A DNA stretch of 64,000 nucleotides from Hyphochytrium catenoides (taxonomy: Eukaryota; Protista; Hyphochytriomycota), in contig FLMG01003777.1 of NCBI GenBank assembly GCA_900088475.1, positions 11,145 to 75,144 on the forward strand, written 5' to 3'. Below, in pieces: positions 4,232 to 57,990 of the stretch. The notes beneath the pieces are model-generated. The model saw only the letters and a list, made by a program, of their open reading frames with translations. It was not told the DNA's origin and made no database searches. The position numbers and the translations under genes were made by a program. Every line of letters begins with the position of its first letter. Position 1 is the stretch's first letter.

Positions 4232-5851
4232 CTAGAGATCCACGCCACCACCACTCTCTTCACTGCTGTCACTGCTAGGCATGGCGACAAATTGCCGCAT
4301 TGCTCTTGCTTTAGCAGAGTTCACTCCCGAGGAAGCAGGGGTCGCGCTGGTTTCTCTGAGATCACTTGACTGCTCCCCTTGTCCATCGGAGCTCCTTCTG
4401 ATGTCATACAGCTTTCCCTGTACCTCGCGTTGCAGCGTAGCGGTAGGAACGGTCGTGACTGTGACGTTGTCAGGAGAAGGTTGCCAACCCATCACCCTTG
4501 TGGTGTAGAGCATTGGACTCTCCGTTTCTTCGGGTGCATTAGAGGGAGGTTGTCCATACACTAGAGGCTGCGCCAGAACAATAGCGGCTGGTGAAGGCGT
4601 TGTAAGAGGGACAGATGGTGATGAATTCCAGGGGCCAGTAGGAGCGGTGAACGGCGCTGTCTGCTCTTGCTGCCGTTGTCGTGCGGCTATCAGCTGATAG
4701 TCATTGGCACTGGAGGGTTGCTGATTAGGCATCATATTCACTTCTTCTTCGTCCGTAGCCGAGAAGGGGTCAGCTTTCCCACCGTCTATAGTCCTACCAG
4801 TTCCCTCTTCTTGTCGCCGCCTTACCTTATCTTTTCCTCGTCGTTTTCGCCACCTCTGAAACCCCACAAGGACAGCAACTGCCACCAGGGCAACGCAGAC
4901 TGCAGCTATGATCCCTCCGATGGCCCCTGCACTAAGCCCACCGTCATCCTCCTGAGGAGGTACGGTGGTGGTCACAGGGCTAGTGCTGAGAGGCTGTTTG
5001 ACCCACGCTGATCGCACACAGACTCCCTCTAAACCTGTAGCGATGGGTGTCGAGGCTGGAACTCTGACTGCTAGCGTATAACAGGCTTCGCCCTTTTGAC
5101 AGGTACTTCTAAAGCCTTCAACGTTGTTCGCCTTCACCTCTGTCTGGCAGGGCGGTGTACCATCGGGAAGAAGACCTTGCCTAGCGACTTCGTAGAGATG
5201 ACAAACTCCTCTAGAGAAAGTCCTAGAGGCGGTATCATAGCATGTCGTCGATGAGAAACCATCAGGACAGCGGCAAGAAGCAAATGGTGAGCCACAGTCA
5301 GCATCTTCCTTGCAGTTCCCACTGGAAGGCTCCTCTACATCCTCTGGCGGGCCAGCATAGATGCCACTGTAACACTTGTTGCTCCCAAGGCATACTTCGT
5401 AGTCTGTGCAGTTGCCCTGAAGCCCATTCGTCTTGACAGCTACGTAGGACTCTTCGCACTTCTTCAGCGTGTCGGTGACAGCATAGCAAACGCCGCTTTG
5501 AAAGGCATAGGTGCGCGATGAAGTATTGTACGGATCTTGGACCACAGAGACGCAGGTAGTTGAGGCCACACTGTCTCTACAGCCGCAAGCGAAGAAGTCT
5601 CCTAGCTTCTGACAATCTTCAAAGTAGATGCAGTCGTAGGAACGTGAAAATCTTCTGGCGGAGACGACCACAGCAGGTGGACCAGACAGCGACAGATACG
5701 ATCGATTATTGGAGAGGAAGACGGAGACTGTCAGCAAAGACAGCAGTAGGTTCCTGACCCCCATCCCTCGTCCTTTTACAACGGGAGGAGAGCTTGGTGA
5801 GTGAAGAGACCTATCGTTCCTCTTGGTGCTCAAGAAGTTAAGGATCTCCAT
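4232..5851 (-). CDS. Hypothetical single-pass type I membrane protein with two Cys-rich extracellular repeats
   Basis: Uninterrupted ORF of about 540 aa. Hydrophobic leader (RNLLLSLLTVSVFL), two related Cys-rich units, a Ser/Thr/Pro stalk, TM segment GLSAGAIGGIIAAVCVALVAVAVLVGF, basic stop-transfer QRWRKRR, and a disordered tail. The true start may be the MGVRN codon near 5764. Confidence 0.8.
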   Translation of the reverse strand: MEILNFLSTKRNDRSLHSPSSPPVVKGRGMGVRNLLLSLLTVSVFLSNNRSYLSLSGPPAVVVSARRFSRSYDCIYFEDCQKLGDFFACGCRDSVASTTCVSVVQDPYNTSSRTYAFQSGVCYAVTDTLKKCEESYVAVKTNGLQGNCTDYEVCLGSNKCYSGIYAGPPEDVEEPSSGNCKEDADCGSPFASCRCPDGFSSTTCYDTASRTFSRGVCHLYEVARQGLLPDGTPPCQTEVKANNVEGFRSTCQKGEACYTLAVRVPASTPIATGLEGVCVRSAWVKQPLSTSPVTTTVPPQEDDGGLSAGAIGGIIAAVCVALVAVAVLVGFQRWRKRRGKDKVRRRQEEGTGRTIDGGKADPFSATDEEEVNMMPNQQPSSANDYQLIAARQRQQEQTAPFTAPTGPWNSSPSVPLTTPSPAAIVLAQPLVYGQPPSNAPEETESPMLYTTRVMGWQPSPDNVTVTTVPTATLQREVQGKLYDIRRSSDGQGEQSSDLRETSATPASSGVNSAKARAMRQFVAMPSSDSSEESGGGVDL

Positions 5852-8118
5852 CACGAACAGCGATGTCTAGCCACTTGATCCTAGTCTTGCCAGAAAGGGT
5901 GGGCAATAAGGAGCCCTGTGGGAATAGGGAAACGGTAGAGACAGAGATGATAGTGATTTCTTGACAAAAGGCGGGAAGAAGCTTCAGCCAACCAGGAGCA
6001 AAGGTTATTACTAGCTTGGGCAGGATATTACGCCAGGAAGGGGCAATAGCTTTGTGAGACTCTTAGCAGCGGATACCGCTCAGAAAGACATCTTCATGTT
6101 CCCTGCAGAGGTCCTGCTGGGTTATTGAAGCGTGATGCGCGCCAGCGCCATGGGGGCGTGCTAGACACCATGCTAGTTGGAGACAGATAGGACATAGAAC
6201 TTGATGCACAGAGGACGACAGAGAGGCAGTCAAGGATAAGTTTAGTTTATCATTAGGATCGATGAACATGCTACTATCCTCACTGCACAGAGAAAAGACA
6301 AGGAACCACACTTTATAAAGCAAAGCACGGCCACCGCTTAACCCTCCTGGGAAACCAGAAACCAGGCACAAAGCCAACGCGACAGAGTGGTCTGCCGCCC
6401 TCTGCCACATAACAACATAACAATGGATGGTATGCTTGAAGAAAAAAAGGATAGAACTGTTCGTGAGAATCAGCTGCGGTCACCTTCCTTGTGGCTTGTG
6501 CTCCCTTTTCTCTTTTGCAAGTACTGCTGGGCAGCTACAGATAACAACGACATTCCTCTTGCCCTCCCCTTCTGCCTGCTGTCAGCCAGAAGAGGAGTTA
6601 GAAGAGCCTTACCGGCAGCACCACAGCTGGCACGCTGCCCGCTGCATCAGGCTCACTTCTCATCACCACCCTTGCGAGCACCACCTCGTCCCCTCCTCTC
6701 CCCTGTCTTATCTTCCTCATCGCCTTGCTGACGGGCCTTGTGATGACGACAATGTCATCATCCCTCCTCTCTCTTTGTTAGGACGGAGCTGTGATGATGG
6801 ATCAGCAGCAGAGAGCTGAGAAGGATGAACAGCAGCAGGGCAGCAGCAGCAGCAAGAGACAGGGAGACAGGGAGGAAGGAAGAAGGAAGAGGACTAGGGG
6901 CCAACACATGCAGGCGAGGAATCGGAAGGTGAGTGGATGATAGGAAGAGTGTGACTATCGTAGCAATGATAGAAGCCTGTATGGGACGGGTGGGCGGATG
7001 AGTCAACCTGATAGTCAAGTGAGCCCTTGAGTCTTCTTCTTCTTCCCCTTTTCTTTCTCCTCGTCGGTCCTTGTGTCCTTGTTATCCCGCCACCACCTCC
7101 TCCTCTCCCTTCTGCCGCCTCGTGGTGGTTGATGATGGCTTGCAATGCGCTTTTGCGAAGTTATTATAAACAAGGATGAACAATGGCAACCAACAGGTCG
7201 CAGAACAAGCCGCGTGGTGCCTGATAATCAAGAGGAGGCTGCTGCTCGCTCGCCGCTGCTGCTGCTGCCGCACACTCCCGCGGGCTTTTTTTGCGGACAA
7301 TATCTTCTGCTTTGGAATGAGCAATGGGCAATGGGACTCCGCCACCACCAACTCAACAGTAGGGCGACAACACTATCAGCACGTCCTTAATAACTATGGC
7401 GAGACTATAGGTAAGTAGGTATCGTAGTAGTGGTGGTGCTGCGTCGTGTGGCGCTTATGATGATAATCCGACAATGATTACACTGATTGATAGTAGCTAT
7501 AGGGTGGGAGGGAGAAGCACACGCACCGTCTTGGAACGAAAGAAAGAGTTCTTCCGGATGAAGAAGGAGAAACTGATGAATTAGATGATGAAAAAGATGA
7601 TGAAGAACCGCCGCAGAAAAAGAAAAAATGATGATGATGTAGTACGTCACGATGATAAATGATAGCAACGGAGATGATGTGAGGACTGGACGATGATGGT
7701 GCTAGCTTTCTGATGGATGAGAGGTGAGAACAAAGCACATTTTTCTCTCAACAGCAGGAGGTCAACAAGAAGCTGGCTTCATCATCATCTTCTTCTTGGT
7801 GGTGGTGGACCTTATAGTTATTAGTAGTATTGAAAAGTAAATGAACCTGGCTTGTGTAGGCAACAGTAAATAAGAATACTGTAAAGCACTTGGCAGGAGT
7901 GGACAGTTAGAGAATCTAGAGAATCATACACTCAGAGAAACCACACAAACGAATACCTGTGATAACCTATAATAGAATCATACCGTAATCATATTTATCG
8001 TAATCTAGTTACTGTCTGTGAGAGGGACTGTATCTAACGTACATTTTATCATGGGTTTGTGATCAGTGATCAGAGACGCTGAACTACTGACAAATCTGCG
8101 CTGATGGTCAGGTCACCA

Positions 8119-8137
8119 CGTGGCCCTATTGCATTGG
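8119..8137 (-). promoter_or_regulatory. Canonical ER stress response element (CCAAT-N9-CCACG) overlapping a CCACGTGG G-box
   Basis: Plus strand CGTGG-ccctattgc-ATTGG is the reverse complement of CCAAT-N9-CCACG. It lies about 220 bp upstream of the SLC35B1-like ATG. The motif match is exact; function is inferred. Confidence 0.55.
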
Positions 8138-8357
8138 TTTCTTCCAGACCGAAGAGACGGAGTTCGGGGTCGCTTGATGAAGGAGCAAAGAATCTCTCAT
8201 CAGCAGGTCAAACCAACTGCCCATCGGAAGACAAGCAGACATAAGTGCTCCCATTACACCTCCTACGCCCAGTTTCGGGGCCACATTGTGTATTTCATAG
8301 CTTAAGGAGGCTTGTGCTTTCTGAGGGAGCTAATCCGGAGCTTCTAACAACGCAATT

Positions 8358-10230
8358 ATGGGCCGCAGCGACCCTCTAAAGCTACTTGTAGCTGTCGGCG
8401 GTATATACGTCTGTTACATATCGTACAGTCTCTACCAAGAGGAAATGTAGGTAGCCACGGGCTTGACAAATGGCGCGACTGCATCTGACTCGATCGGATT
8501 TCGTAGCTACAAGTACCGTGGGCCAAAGGGGGAACGCTTTACCTCTACCTTGTTTCTTCTCTTGGTACAATGCAGTGTGAACTTCCTCTTCGCGCTATTC
8601 GGTAGGTGACACTTCTGGAGTTTCGAAGGCTCACTAAGAGATGCTTATTCTCACGTCTCTCTGTAGGGTCGCTGATTCTTGGTGGCTCAGCAAAGCTCCC
8701 ATGGCACTCTGTAATGTTTACAGCGGCCTCTTACATTGGAGCAATGACCTGCAGCAATGAGGCGCTTAAAGTAAGAAAATCCGTGCTGTCCTTTTGGCAC
8801 TGGAACCGTTTGAAGCTAAGTTTGTTCGACAGCATGTTAGCTTCCCTACTCAGGCACTGGCGAAGTCCTGCAAGATGATCCCCGTGGTAATTAGAACCTA
8901 ATCCTATCCTACCTTTTCCTGCGAACGCTCTTTATTGATACATCAAAACCTCTCACGTAGATGTTGATGGGTATCTTCATTAGAGGAAAGCGCTACACTT
9001 TACAGGAGTACCTCTGCGTTGGGCTGATTACATTGGGCATCTCACGTATGGACAAGAGCTTGCTTTAGGCTTAGTTGTAGTTTGCCTTGTCTTGCCTTGG
9101 TGTGTCTCCTTCCTCTTTCTGCCTCTTTTGCTGCTGTTTGTACGTCTTATGTGGACTGCATAACCTTCGGCTCTGCTTGAAGGTCAAGGGCTTGCTTTCT
9201 TTCTCGTCCGTTACGGTTGATTTGCTAACTGTTCCTTCCTAGTCTTTCAGCTTGGTTCAAAAAAGAACAAGGTTGAGAAGGAAAATAGCCTTTATGGCAT
9301 GGCCCTGCTATTCCTCTCTCTCGTCCTAGACGGAGTGACGGGCCCGTCCCAGGAGGTTGTCATCCAGAATTACAAGCCTACCACGCACCAGTTGATGATG
9401 CATACGAATGGTTGGGCTATAATTTACCTCCTGATAGGTACTAACGGACCTTACACTAGTGCCGTAGCAATAGCCAAGACCAGCGGCCCTATCATTGACT
9501 TACGCCACCCTTACCCTATCCTCTGGTCCCCTCAGATACTGCCATTTACAGGTCTAGGCGCCGTTTGTTTGGGACGCTCTGACAGATTTCTCTCCTTTGC
9601 AGGTTGTGTTGTAACTGGGCAGCTGCAGACTGGCCTCTCTTTTCTACTCGACCATCCCCTTATCCTGCAGTCAGTAATCGTCTTTTCGTTAACCAGCGCA
9701 GCAGGTAAAATGCTTGGAAGGTCTAGCTTGAGCTACTTTAACTGTGTTTCCCGACAATCCGGGAACTTCTAATGTCCCCGCTTTAACACTATGTAGGCCA
9801 AAACTTTATCTTCTTCACCATCAAGAATTTCAATGCCCTGGTCTGCACAACCATTACGACTACTAGAAAGTGCGTGACGGTGATCCTGTCGGTAGTTTTC
9901 TTTGGTCATTATCTTGTACAGCAGCAATGGCTGGGAGTTCTCCTGGTAAACATTGGACTAGGTAAGCCTTGAAAAGTGACTGATCTGGAGGCTATCGCTA
10001 AACGGCAGGCGGGAGAGGTCTTTGACAATTCTGTCCTGCTTATAGCATGGGAGTTGAAGAGCAAGTACGACAAGCACAATGCTCGTCTGAAGGAGCATGC
10101 CCTAAAGAAGGATCAAACGGAGCTCGGGGATGTAGGCCTGCCAGAGGGCCAGATGAAGGCTAACGGAGTCACAGCAGCTTCTGCGACTTCCAATGGCAGA
10201 AGGAAGTCTAAGACGCGCAGAGCTGAATAG
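8358..10230 (+). CDS. SLC35B1: UAA-family ER nucleotide-sugar (UDP-Gal/ATP-ADP) transporter, SLC35B1/HUT1/UTr1-like, 9 exons
   Basis: Spliced reading MGRSDPLKLLVAVGGIYVCYISYSLYQEEI...SYIGAMTCSNEALK|HVSFPTQALAKSCKMIPV|MLMG...LSLVLDGVTGPSQE...GQNFIFFTIKNFNALVCTTITTTRKCVTVILSVVFFGH. All junctions are GT-AG. Confidence 0.92.
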
Positions 10231-10392
10231 AGATAGACTGCCGCTACCTTAGCTATTTATCACAGAAGTCATCATATACACCGCATCCCCCTCATGTAAG
10301 CTTCTCGTAATGTAGGGTAGGCTGATCAAAAAGCCCAGCCGCCTACGATTCTATTGAAGGTAATACATAAGAGACTCGGGGACTCCATAGCA

Positions 10393-11130
10393 TTACAACT
10401 CTTTCTTCTCAAAGTCCTGAATATTTAAGAGCTCTACTTCGAAGACAAGAGTGGCTCCACCAGGAATCTTTGGAGGAGAGCCCTGAGCTCCATAACCCAG
10501 ATTGGCAGGAATCACGAGCTTGCGCTTTTCACTGTAATCATAGTGTTGTGAGGCGGGATGATGTGAGAAGTGTTATCTGTCATATGGTTAACTTACCCGA
10601 TGCACATGTTGCTCAGTCTTGATGATATTTTAGTATGCAGAGGAGGATAGAAACGAAACGTCAGTTGTCATTATAAGCGGTACCTGTCCTTCATCTGATG
10701 TCTTACCCTCTGTCCCATCCCTGCATACGGATAAGGTCAACACGTTGTCAGTTCGATGGATGCACAGATGGTGCCTTTTATGGGCTTACCTGGATGACTT
10801 GACCGATACCAAGCACAAATTCAAATGGCTGTTTGCGGTCCACACTGGAATCAAACTTAGAGCCATCGGAGTAGAGGGTGCCGGTATAGTGCATCGAAAG
10901 TTTATCTCCGACAGTGGACTTCCTAACGCATGTGTTGGGACGGTGCTTCATGACGCCCATGTGAGCAAATGTTAGTCACCCAAAGACGATCACGGGCTGA
11001 CCTTGACGCCGATACGAAGTTGCGAGTCCGGAGGCAAGTCCTCCTTCTTCTGCTTTGCCAAAGTCAAAGTGCCCAGCTCAGCAGCGACAGCAAGCAGGCA
11101 CAGGAAAGAGACCACTGTGAACACCTTCAT
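10393..11130 (-). CDS. FKBP2: ER-lumenal FKBP-type peptidyl-prolyl isomerase (FKBP2/FKBP13-like), 5 exons including 14-nt and 21-nt micro-exons
   Basis: Signal peptide [17 protein letters not shown], then LRIGVK|HRP...[22 protein letters not shown]...[10 protein letters not shown]|GWDRG|LSNMCIG|[35 protein letters not shown], ending in KKEL*. Confidence 0.95.
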
Positions 11131-11176
11131 GGTTTGTCAATGTAAGCCTCTGCGATAGCACGTACGTTGGAAGGCG

Positions 11177-11195
11177 CGTGTGTGAAGATTATTGG
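11177..11195 (-). promoter_or_regulatory. ERSE-like element (CCAAT-N10-CACG) about 47 bp upstream of the FKBP start codon
   Basis: Plus strand CGTG-tgtgaagatt-ATTGG reads CCAAT-aatcttcaca-CACG on the FKBP sense strand. Confidence 0.5.
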
Positions 11196-11837
11196 ACAAG
11201 GGCTGCTGCTGATCTGCTGATGCGATTGAATATCACTATCAAATCACTGCCCACCCCAGCACTTGCTCTCTGCTCTCTGCCCGCTGTTTGTTAGATTTTC
11301 CAGATCTGAAGATTCATCAACCAGCAGAGTGCCAGATGTCAAGAAGAGAGCCAAGCCGTTGTTGTGTATGGGGGTAGCACCCACCCCAATACAAGATATA
11401 TGTTGACAATGAACCTCTTGGACGCCCACCCACCCTATTGAGGTAAGGTATTCTCCAAGATCCATCTCCTTATCTTGGACATATCGGGAACAAGGGAGCA
11501 ACGTATCCATCATTCGTTCCTTGTGCCCAACAAAATGATGATGATGATAATGAACGCGGCGTCGAAGCTGTTGATAGACAGAAGAATAGATGATGAAAGC
11601 TATGATGATCCTAAGAGGAGTACGTCCCGTAGTAAGTAATAAGTGCAAAGATGACCAGAGAACAAAGGCCTTGCTAGTGACGAAAGCGGCGGACGTTGAA
11701 ACAGAAGCGAGGCCGAACTGTATGGAAACTGTACTAAGACAATTACTTGGATGACATCCTGTCCATCCAGACGGACACCACAGCTAATATACTATAAACC
11801 ATCGAAGAACAGAATGGATCTCGAAGTGAGTCCTACA

Positions 11838-57775: not shown

Positions 57776-57990
57776 CGTTGTTCGCCAATCAGATGTTGCT
57801 CGAGGTTAAGGTCCCATTAGATAAACTGACCGCCTAGAAGGATGCGAAGGGCACGAAACATAATTGCGTCCAATTATATAAAAGCACGAAATGTAAACCT
57901 CCCTGCCTTTGTCTATGCTTTATAAAGCTGGTTCGGCGGAAGTTGCCTCCCTTATACCTCCTCTTAATCGTTCTTGGTTCCCCTGTCTCT

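Follow-up and report, generated by a model that had tools for sequence, protein, structure and literature searches.

Two exact matches to known ER-stress elements lie upstream of two adjacent ER genes in the hyphochytrid stramenopile Hyphochytrium catenoides: a mammalian-type ERSE-I (CCAAT-N9-CCACG) at an SLC35B1/HUT1-like transporter gene and a plant-type ERSE (CCAAT-N10-CACG) at an FKBP gene. The question raised by this locus is whether they belong to a transcriptional UPR with the cis-element geometry of animals and plants. Cis-codes of a transcriptional UPR have been described in yeast, animals and plants, and UPR targets elsewhere include FKBP13/FPR2-type genes. In literature searches, no transcriptional UPR cis-code was found described for a stramenopile's own genes. 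The window is the whole stretch of DNA analysed (64,000 nucleotides); positions are those of the window unless a contig is named.

The two genes and their upstream sites

Both matches reported in the earlier note are present in the sequence, and the identity of both genes is backed by Pfam and PDB (Table 1). Human SLC35B1 is the only PDB match of the transporter gene (E 5e-10). The exons of both genes were searched individually; exon 1 and the splice phase of the transporter gene were taken from the sequence by reading. The FKBP2-like protein has a signal-peptide-like N-terminus and ends in ...EKKEL; KEEL or HDEL are the C-termini of other ER residents in this genome.

Table 1. Features of the two genes and of their upstream regions. 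Elements without a strand are given an empty cell.
Feature	Position	Strand	Evidence or remark
G-box CCACGTGGC (minus strand, GCCACGTG; palindrome, CCACGTGG)	8116..8124		Portion of the ERSE match that recurs at ER genes
Exact ERSE-I consensus CCAAT-N9-CCACG, CCAATGCAATAGGGCCACG	8119..8137	-	Only exact match in the window; 1 of 44 in the genome
CCAAT pentamer	8133..8137	-	About 8-9 nt from the GCCACGTG G-box
Allele-invariant island with G-box and CCAAT	8060..8255		Comparison of two-haplotype contigs
SLC35B1/HUT1-like nucleotide(-sugar) transporter gene, many short introns	8358..10230	+	Exons match Pfam UAA (PF08449)
ER-type FKBP (FKBP2/FKBP13-like) gene	10393..11130	-	ORFs; FKBP_C exons; FKBP2 among best PDB matches
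CCAAT-N10-CACG match CCAATAATCTTCACACACG	11177..11195	-	46 nt upstream of the FKBP ATG (11130); 1 of 171 genome matches

The CCAATGCAATAGGGCCACG match is found 221-239 nt upstream of the transporter ATG, in reverse orientation to this plus-strand gene, and its CCACG overlaps the G-box, of which it is a part. The CCAATAATCTTCACACACG match has the orientation of the FKBP gene. It carries CACACACGCGCC in place of CCACG, and no G-box was found at this upstream site. When the two-haplotype contigs are compared, nine differences are found in 7954-8059, nine in 8286-8354 and none between, so that the flanks of the island are highly polymorphic; the FKBP match is likewise included in an allele-invariant stretch (10943-11235). 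The contigs compared are DNA contigs, and no spliced joint is seen in them.

Frequency of the bipartite element

The earlier note considered the two matches unlikely to be due to chance. This holds inside the window, which contains one ERSE-I match for 0.03 expected and three N10 matches for 0.24 expected, but not genome-wide, where the composite is as frequent as a reversed control (exact ERSE-I, 44 vs 52; CCAAT-N10-CACG, 171 vs 181). The third N10 match of the window (57870-57888) sits between two convergent 3' ends, and three N10 matches are expected to coincide in about one 64-kb window of the 61-Mb genome.

Regions of 1.5 kb upstream of 25 ER genes were analysed. This set is small and hand-picked, in part the first Pfam match served as an approximate gene start, and the upstream regions of PDI (C292) and of a P5-like PDI (C2847) are cut by contig ends. 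CCAAT-N10-CACG is found only at the two discovery genes. The enrichment expected at ER chaperone promoters failed to appear, as the composite is found in 0 of the 23 other regions, which include those of BiP, calreticulin, calnexin, GRP94, GRP170, the Derlins and Sec61. None of the 44 exact ERSE-I matches is located on contig regions carrying calreticulin, calnexin, any HSP70 or HSP90, or near core UPR targets (BiP, GRP94, calreticulin, calnexin, Derlin and others). Over the ER upstream regions, the histogram of CCAAT-to-CACG spacing is flat, with no peak, and CCAAT is not enriched (1.84 per kb vs 1.54 per kb in the background). ER-stress gene promoters at this locus carry the ERSE consensus; neither recurrence at core targets nor preferred spacing nor over-representation is found.

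Several candidate elements were rejected. The composite ERSE as regulon element is rejected for its absence from the 23 genes, the flat spacing and the lack of genome excess. A constant pairing of CCAAT with the G-box is not seen, none of the remaining GCCACGTG sites having a CCAAT at a fixed offset. ERSE-II (ATTGG-N-CCACG) and the UPRE forms TGACGT and TGACGTG are absent or show no enrichment.

G-boxes upstream of ER genes

The G-box part of the transporter match does recur. In an unbiased k-mer test of the ER upstream regions (17,557 tests), the top 8-mer is GCCACGTG (7 genes, P 5e-10). Its eight sites are found upstream of seven of the 25 genes: calreticulin (two sites), GRP94, GRP170, SDF2-like, ER-mannosidase-I-like, Derlin and the HUT1-like transporter. 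Calreticulin has two more CACGTGG boxes in addition to its two GCCACGTG copies. The consensus of the eight sites is GCCACGTG(T/G). At the ER folding and quality-control genes, the G-boxes lie 0.2-1.4 kb upstream; the farthest ones (Derlin, -1.33 kb; mannosidase, -0.98 kb from the ATG) may belong to other genes.

Genome-wide, GCCACGTG shows a modest excess (922 vs 771; 1 per 66 kb). From this rate, 0.565 sites are expected at the ER genes for the eight observed (P 1.6e-7); when the two genes from which the motif was first suspected are left out, five sites are found for 0.52 expected (P 2e-4). The observed G-box score exceeds that of all 300 random tile sets. A background of about 278 kb contains at most one GCCACGTG site; the extended form [AC]CACGTGGC has eight sites in seven ER genes and none in this background. 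Upstream of the control genes (14 proteasome genes, four p24 genes, STT3, thioredoxin and cytosolic HSP70/HSP90), the motif is absent.

Among the CCACGTN forms, CCACGTG alone is enriched upstream of ER genes, with no enrichment of CCACGTC, CCACGTA or CCACGTT; neither CACGTGG nor ACACGTGGC is over-represented genome-wide. As in UPRE/CCACG-box elements, the sites have a GCCACGT core with an ACGT centre and are selectively enriched at ER chaperone and ERAD genes, with BiP and calnexin as exceptions. The 1.5 kb upstream of BiP, the canonical target, are devoid of GCCACGTG and contain only the near-variants GCCACGCGT and CCACGTC; the motif is also absent upstream of calnexin, Sec61 alpha and the second Derlin.

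The G-box gene list defines a candidate ER proteostasis regulon. As the G-box recurs at ER genes and the composite stays at chance level, such a regulon is likely, without ERSE geometry. The transcriptional UPR with conserved geometry proposed in the earlier note is retained in part: a programme common to ER genes, acting through a CCACG-containing bZIP-type site, is likely from the GCCACGTG enrichment and the presence of IRE1 and bZIPs in the genome, and the N9/N10 spacing is not supported as its element.

Another motif, CACGCG / CCACGCG, is found at BiP, calnexin, GRP94, Sec61 alpha and FKBP. As its enrichment is weak (6 vs 1.6 expected, P 0.006 uncorrected), it is treated as a lead only.

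Candidate factors and comparison with known systems

IRE1 and NF-YA, whose search had been proposed with the initial claim, are both present according to domain matches. IRE1 is complete (luminal, transmembrane, kinase and KEN pieces, locus L014; KEN above the Pfam cut-off). NF-YA is encoded by two exons with CBFB_NFYA domain matches (C1991:14099-14481). About 19 bZIP loci match the bZIP_1 profile. The ERO1 profile (PF04137) has no match in this genome and none in control genomes either.

Four known systems can be compared with these sites. Like the mammalian ERSE-I (NF-Y + ATF6/XBP1), the SLC35B1-like gene has one exact match, the CCACG half recurs at ER chaperones, and NF-YA is present. In contrast to the mammalian case, BiP, GRP94, calreticulin and 20 further ER genes lack the bipartite form, which shows no genome-wide excess, and what recurs is a palindromic G-box that has no accompanying CCAAT. 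The plant ERSE-I (bZIP28/bZIP60 + NF-Y) has its exact match close to the FKBP ATG, but this match has nine specified bases only and a frequency equal to that of the control, lacks any G-box or CCACG, and is found at no other ER gene apart from the transporter gene. Yeast Hac1 UPRE-2 has a TACGTG core, and plant G-box/ABRE elements have the forms GCCACGTGGC and ACGTGGC. The sites described here share the ACGTG core with them and have flanks as in GCCACGTGT or GCCACGTGG; the HUT1-like, SDF2-like and calreticulin sites are near-perfect plant-type G-boxes. Plant G-boxes serve light, ABA and other responses, not ER ones, whereas here they are tied to ER genes. The XBP1s/ATF6 site (GCCACGT core; UPRE TGACGTGG; CCACGTCA) is similar in its enrichment at ER folding and ERAD genes, in the presence of IRE1, and in its core, identical to the XBP1s consensus GCCACGT (PMC6199730, PMC6959563). 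It differs in its second half, which is G(T/G) here, giving CACGTG, and not CA(T/G); CCACGTC is without enrichment.

Proposed regulation of the ER genes

The preferred reading, held with modest confidence from sequence comparisons, is that the G-box is a real cis-element marking ER proteostasis genes, likely read by an IRE1-type bZIP, that ERSE/NF-Y is not the code of the regulon, and that the FKBP match is probably due to chance. The GCCACGT core would correspond to the half-site favoured by bZIP factors of the ER-stress response, mammalian XBP1s among them. With this core, a full-length IRE1 and several bZIP loci at hand, it is most likely that an IRE1-activated (Hac1/XBP1/bZIP60-like) or related bZIP dimer binds the palindromic G-box, which would lead to higher transcription of the ER genes. 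The bipartite architecture with NF-Y would play no part in this code. At the HUT1-like gene, the ERSE match would be a CCAAT pentamer coincidentally near a genuine G-box, GCCACGTG(G/T); its placement is probably incidental, an NF-Y site being still conceivable. The FKBP match most likely arose by chance, within a short stretch of proximal promoter or 5' UTR that is under constraint.

If the G-box marks these ER genes, the GCCACG half-site of ER-stress bZIPs would be far older than its partner motifs, and the NF-Y-dependent ERSE geometry would not be universal. The result provides a short testable target list and a motif with which the responsible factor could be traced in pseudofungi and their oomycete relatives. 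It also illustrates that a sequence fitting a famous consensus to the letter may be half coincidence and half real.

Alternative readings

The G-box could be real without being a stress element. It would then be bound by a bHLH factor or a general G-box bZIP and would drive constitutive or developmental expression of ER and secretory capacity, independently of IRE1/ATF6 signalling. The classical binding site of bHLH and plant GBF-type factors is CACGTG. As bHLH factors, too, can occupy such boxes, the link to a bZIP and IRE1 is a presumed one. This alternative would fit the enrichment of CCACGTG and not of the metazoan UPRE form CCACGTCA, and the lack of a box at BiP. It is nevertheless considered rather unlikely, since the genes with a box (calreticulin, GRP94, GRP170, SDF2, Derlin, ER mannosidase, SLC35B1) are classical UPR targets and p24 and STT3 have none, the extended core is that of XBP1s, and IRE1 is complete.

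A true bipartite ERSE, with NF-Y and a CCACG-binding bZIP at fixed spacing, could operate at some ER-stress promoters, including those of both genes, with stand-alone G-boxes at others. It is favoured by the locus itself: two neighbouring ER genes each have an exact match no more than 250 bp from the ATG, to ERSE-I in one case and to the plant-type ERSE in the other, for about 0.0007 N10 matches expected per gene start. Both matches are in allele-invariant stretches, and the genome encodes NF-YA. XBP1 peaks in mouse are also accompanied by NF-Y motifs. Furthermore, in the part of the genome where the N10 and GCCACGTG lists are both comparable, 3 of the 24 CCAAT-N10-CACG sites (C64:18231, C460:57439, C499:75214) have a separate GCCACGTG 85-190 bp away, for 0.15 expected (P 5e-4), so that some promoters may carry a real composite. 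However, the composite is missing from the other ER genes, although BiP, GRP94 and calreticulin carry ERSEs in animals and plants, and genome excess, spacing preference and CCAAT enrichment are all lacking. The CCACG of the HUT1-like match is supplied by the G-box, so that only the CCAAT 5-mer must land there by chance; the FKBP site has CACACACGCGCC and not CCACG; and the locus was picked out of more than 1,000 windows read. The bipartite ERSE is thus judged unlikely. Its specific form in this lineage, an NF-Y/bZIP ERSE (N9/N10) at a subset of hyphochytrid stramenopile promoters beside stand-alone G-box UPREs, is slightly less likely still. If true, the bipartite geometry would predate the animal/plant/stramenopile split, and the clustering of N10 sites with G-boxes on the three contigs would be its trace.

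That nothing here is functional, the ERSE matches and the clustering of G-boxes arising by chance or as by-products of composition or gene choice, would agree with the modest genome excess of GCCACGTG, the lack of any for CACGTGG and ACACGTGGC, and the small hand-picked gene set, but is very improbable in view of the departure from the genome rate with or without the discovery genes, the near-absence of the motif (at most one site) from about 27 control upstream regions and the 278-kb background taken together, and the observed score, which none of the 300 permutations matched.

The two motif matches and their genes

Both matches claimed in the earlier note exist and lie upstream of the genes that it named. 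The ERSE-I match (CCAAT-N9-CCACG) is 221-239 nt upstream of the ATG at 8358 of a plus-strand, intron-rich gene; as the match is on the minus strand, it is reversed relative to this gene. The match to the plant-type pattern CCAAT-N10-CACG (N10) is 46 nt upstream of the FKBP ATG at 11130, in the orientation of this minus-strand gene. Exons were searched one by one, not as joined spliced protein models. Those of the first gene match the UAA transporter family, and its sole solved-structure relative is human SLC35B1. Those of the second match FKBP_C, with FKBP2/FKBP13 among the best solved-structure matches; the protein has an N-terminal signal-peptide-like segment and a C-terminal KKEL (window 10393-10400). 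The identifications as an SLC35B1/HUT1-like transporter and an ER FKBP therefore hold. ER-retrieval tails vary by protein: KEEL in calreticulin, GRP94 and GRP170, HDEL in BiP, KKEL in the FKBP.

The two genes are convergent and therefore have no common promoter. The nearest gene upstream of the transporter gene is on the opposite strand and starts more than 2 kb away. This divergent neighbour (4232-5854, minus) is a single-exon 540-aa ORF whose product has a cysteine-rich ectodomain, a single transmembrane segment and a tail rich in Pro and Ser.

Motif matches in the window, G-box sites upstream of ER genes, and N10 sites associated with G-boxes elsewhere in the genome (C, contig; negative positions are relative to the ATG unless stated)
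Feature	Sequence or gene	Position	Strand	Remark
ERSE-I match	CCAATGCAATAGGGCCACG	8119-8137	minus	exact, in window sequence
N10 match	CCAATAATCTTCACACACG	11177-11195	minus	exact, in window sequence
G-box site	calreticulin			two copies
G-box site	GRP94	-632		from ATG of signal-peptide exon
G-box site	GRP170	-518
G-box site	SDF2-like gene	about -300		from first recognised coding exon
G-box site	ER-mannosidase-I-like gene	-983
G-box site	one Derlin	-1333
G-box site	SLC35B1-like gene	-241
N10 + separate G-box		C64:18231-18376	same strand
N10 + separate G-box		C460:57439-57549	same strand
N10 + separate G-box		C499:75214-75412	same strand
N10 overlapping a G-box		C289:6789-6807		fourth case

Frequency and recurrence of the composite motif

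The argument that these matches are unlikely by chance stands inside the window, where ERSE-I occurs once (0.03 expected) and N10 three times (0.24 expected), but not at the scale of the genome. In 61.0 Mb (4,759 records), neither pattern is in excess over its reversed-pattern control (ERSE-I, 44 vs 52; N10, 171 vs 181), and three N10 matches should fall together in about one 64-kb window. The third N10 match (CCAATTATATAAAAGCACG, 57870-57888) is flanked on both sides by the 3' ends of convergent genes and is taken as chance.

ER genes were located by family search: calreticulin, calnexin, HSP70s including BiP and GRP170, HSP90s including GRP94, Derlins, Sec61 alpha, GH47 mannosidases, MIR/SDF2-like genes, p24 and STT3. 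The 44 exact ERSE-I sites all lie away from them. Among 25 ER genes (1.5 kb upstream), N10 is confined to the two genes of the window; the enrichment at other ER-gene promoters that an ERSE regulon implied is absent. The spacing between CCAAT and CACG shows no peak in ER upstream regions, and CCAAT is not enriched upstream of ER genes (1.84 vs 1.54 per kb). Given no genome excess, no recurrence, no spacing peak and no CCAAT enrichment, an ER regulon in this genome does not use the composite as its code. The ERSE/ATF6-NF-Y reading, as put forward, is unsupported.

A G-box upstream of ER genes

The CCACG of the ERSE-I match is half of a palindrome, CCACGTGG, at 8116-8123. An unbiased comparison of k-mers between 20 ER upstream regions and 233 kb of other sequence put GCCACGTG first among 8-mers, with 8 sites in 7 genes vs 1 background site (P 5e-10, 17,557 tests); the best score of the ER set exceeded those of all 300 random tile sets. 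When 25 ER genes are used, 7 of them have the form [AC]CACGTGGC upstream, at 8 sites altogether; it does not occur in 278 kb of background. The genome rate of GCCACGTG (922 strand hits, or 1 in about 66 kb) predicts 0.565 sites for the ER set (8 found; P 1.6e-7), and 0.52 once the two genes from which the motif was suggested are removed (5 found; P 2e-4). All the evidence is sequence statistics, drawn from 25 ER genes and about 27 control genes that were assembled by hand; for several of them the first Pfam match stands in for the gene start. The 9-mer ACACGTGGC has 173 genome sites, 5 of them inside the 37 kb of ER upstream sequence (P 1e-7).

The signal is specific in form and in gene class. 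CCACGTG occurs 15 times in ER upstream regions vs 1.6 expected; CCACGTC, CCACGTA and CCACGTT are at background level and CCACGCG is weakly raised. No GCCACGTG was found upstream of 14 proteasome, four p24 and STT3 genes, nor of cytosolic HSP70, cytosolic HSP90, mitochondrial HSP70 and six thioredoxin loci. GCCACGTG is the sole form with a moderate genome excess (922 vs 771 in the control), compatible with about 100 or more functional copies. GCCACGTGT reads in the gene direction at 4 of 5 non-palindromic sites; no CCAAT lies at a fixed offset from the other G-box sites. This G-box, related to the XBP1/ATF6 half-site, thus appears from its distribution to be the organism's genuine ER-regulon element.

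Upstream of calreticulin there are four CACGTGG boxes, from -530 to -712. They occupy 190 bp (locus L009, C3097, 2327-2516); two are CCACGTGG palindromes 16 bp apart, and a CT-rich low-complexity tract separates the cluster from the ATG. Runs of N, either assembly gaps or withheld letters, occur between GA-rich repeats upstream of GRP170 (L006, about 970-1040) and of the HSP110-like gene (L007, about 2350-2440); motif counts there are therefore lower bounds.

No GCCACGTG is found upstream of BiP and calnexin. The BiP upstream region (L003, C3024) has GCCACGCGT at -830, CCACGTC at -768 and several CGTGGC. CCACGCG or CACGCG precedes the calnexin, GRP94, Sec61 alpha and FKBP genes and could represent a weaker form of the element (6 vs 1.6 expected). 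ATGCACGTGGTA, in which a CACGTGG box is flanked differently, occurs upstream of a cytosolic HSP110-like HSP70 (L007, C4414, -209) and of calreticulin (L009, -561) and is possibly a second site class.

The two matches read against the G-box

The transporter-upstream site belongs to the G-box family (GGGCCACGTGGTG), so that the first match overlaps what appears to be an ER-regulon G-box. Since the box already supplies CCACG, a CCAAT pentamer placed at either of two positions suffices for a full ERSE-I. Chance would provide it at an order of 0.2-0.3 % per G-box, i.e. at one or two of about 900 genome sites. There is no G-box at the FKBP site, whose CACG sits in CACACACGCGCC, then CGTACGTG. ACACGCG and CACGCGCC recur at a few ER genes, a weak signal (P about 0.003-0.006, uncorrected). 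The FKBP match is probably due to chance; a function for it is doubtful.

Candidate factors

The genome encodes NF-YA and IRE1, both of which the earlier note proposed to look for, and it has about 19 bZIP_1 matches. The luminal domain, transmembrane segment, kinase motifs and KEN/RNase domain of IRE1 were found in gene pieces. In mouse XBP1s ChIP, the top motif is GCCACGT, with NF-Y motifs nearby (PMC6199730); GCCACGT/CCACGTCA is given in PMC6959563. A dimer with both halves preferring GCCAC would read GCCACGTGGC, which favours an IRE1-dependent or related bZIP. The likeliest mechanism is that such a factor acts at the G-box, a link that is inferred. That bHLH or general G-box factors act on this palindromic CACGTG-type element instead is a serious rival.

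A bipartite ERSE is distinctly improbable given the genome counts, and is kept alive by one lead. In the first contigs, through C499 (some 6.6 Mb), where the listed matches of both motifs can be compared, 3 of 24 N10 sites have a separate same-strand GCCACGTG G-box at a distance of 85-190 bp vs 0.15 expected (P 5e-4); two of these three sites (on C64, C460 and C499) are exact ERSE-I matches.

No description of a UPR cis-element of a stramenopile's own genes was found in a literature search. The apparent signal-peptide exon of IRE1 itself contains CCACGTGACGTGGC (L014, C4281, about 2655-2675), in which a G-box and a TGACGTGG UPRE-like site overlap; this could be a site of autoregulation, or coding sequence that resembles one by coincidence.

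Allelic variation around the promoters

Public DNA contigs aligned with the window give two haplotypes, the genome being diploid-heterozygous; for the assembly, NCLDV-derived scaffolds and a SNP frequency near 0.0275 are reported (PMC5795050). The haplotypes show no difference in 8060-8255, which includes the G-box and CCAAT, and 9 differences in each flank (7954-8059 and 8286-8354). Similarly, 10943-11235 (FKBP exon 1 and 105 nt upstream) is invariant, differences beginning at 11236. The invariant stretches point to constrained promoter cores, in which CCAAT is not singled out. The flanks (7954-8059, 8286-8354, 11236-11329) are very divergent, at some 9 differences in every 70-105 bp, and the haplotypes are separated by an indel of 9 bp at 11292.
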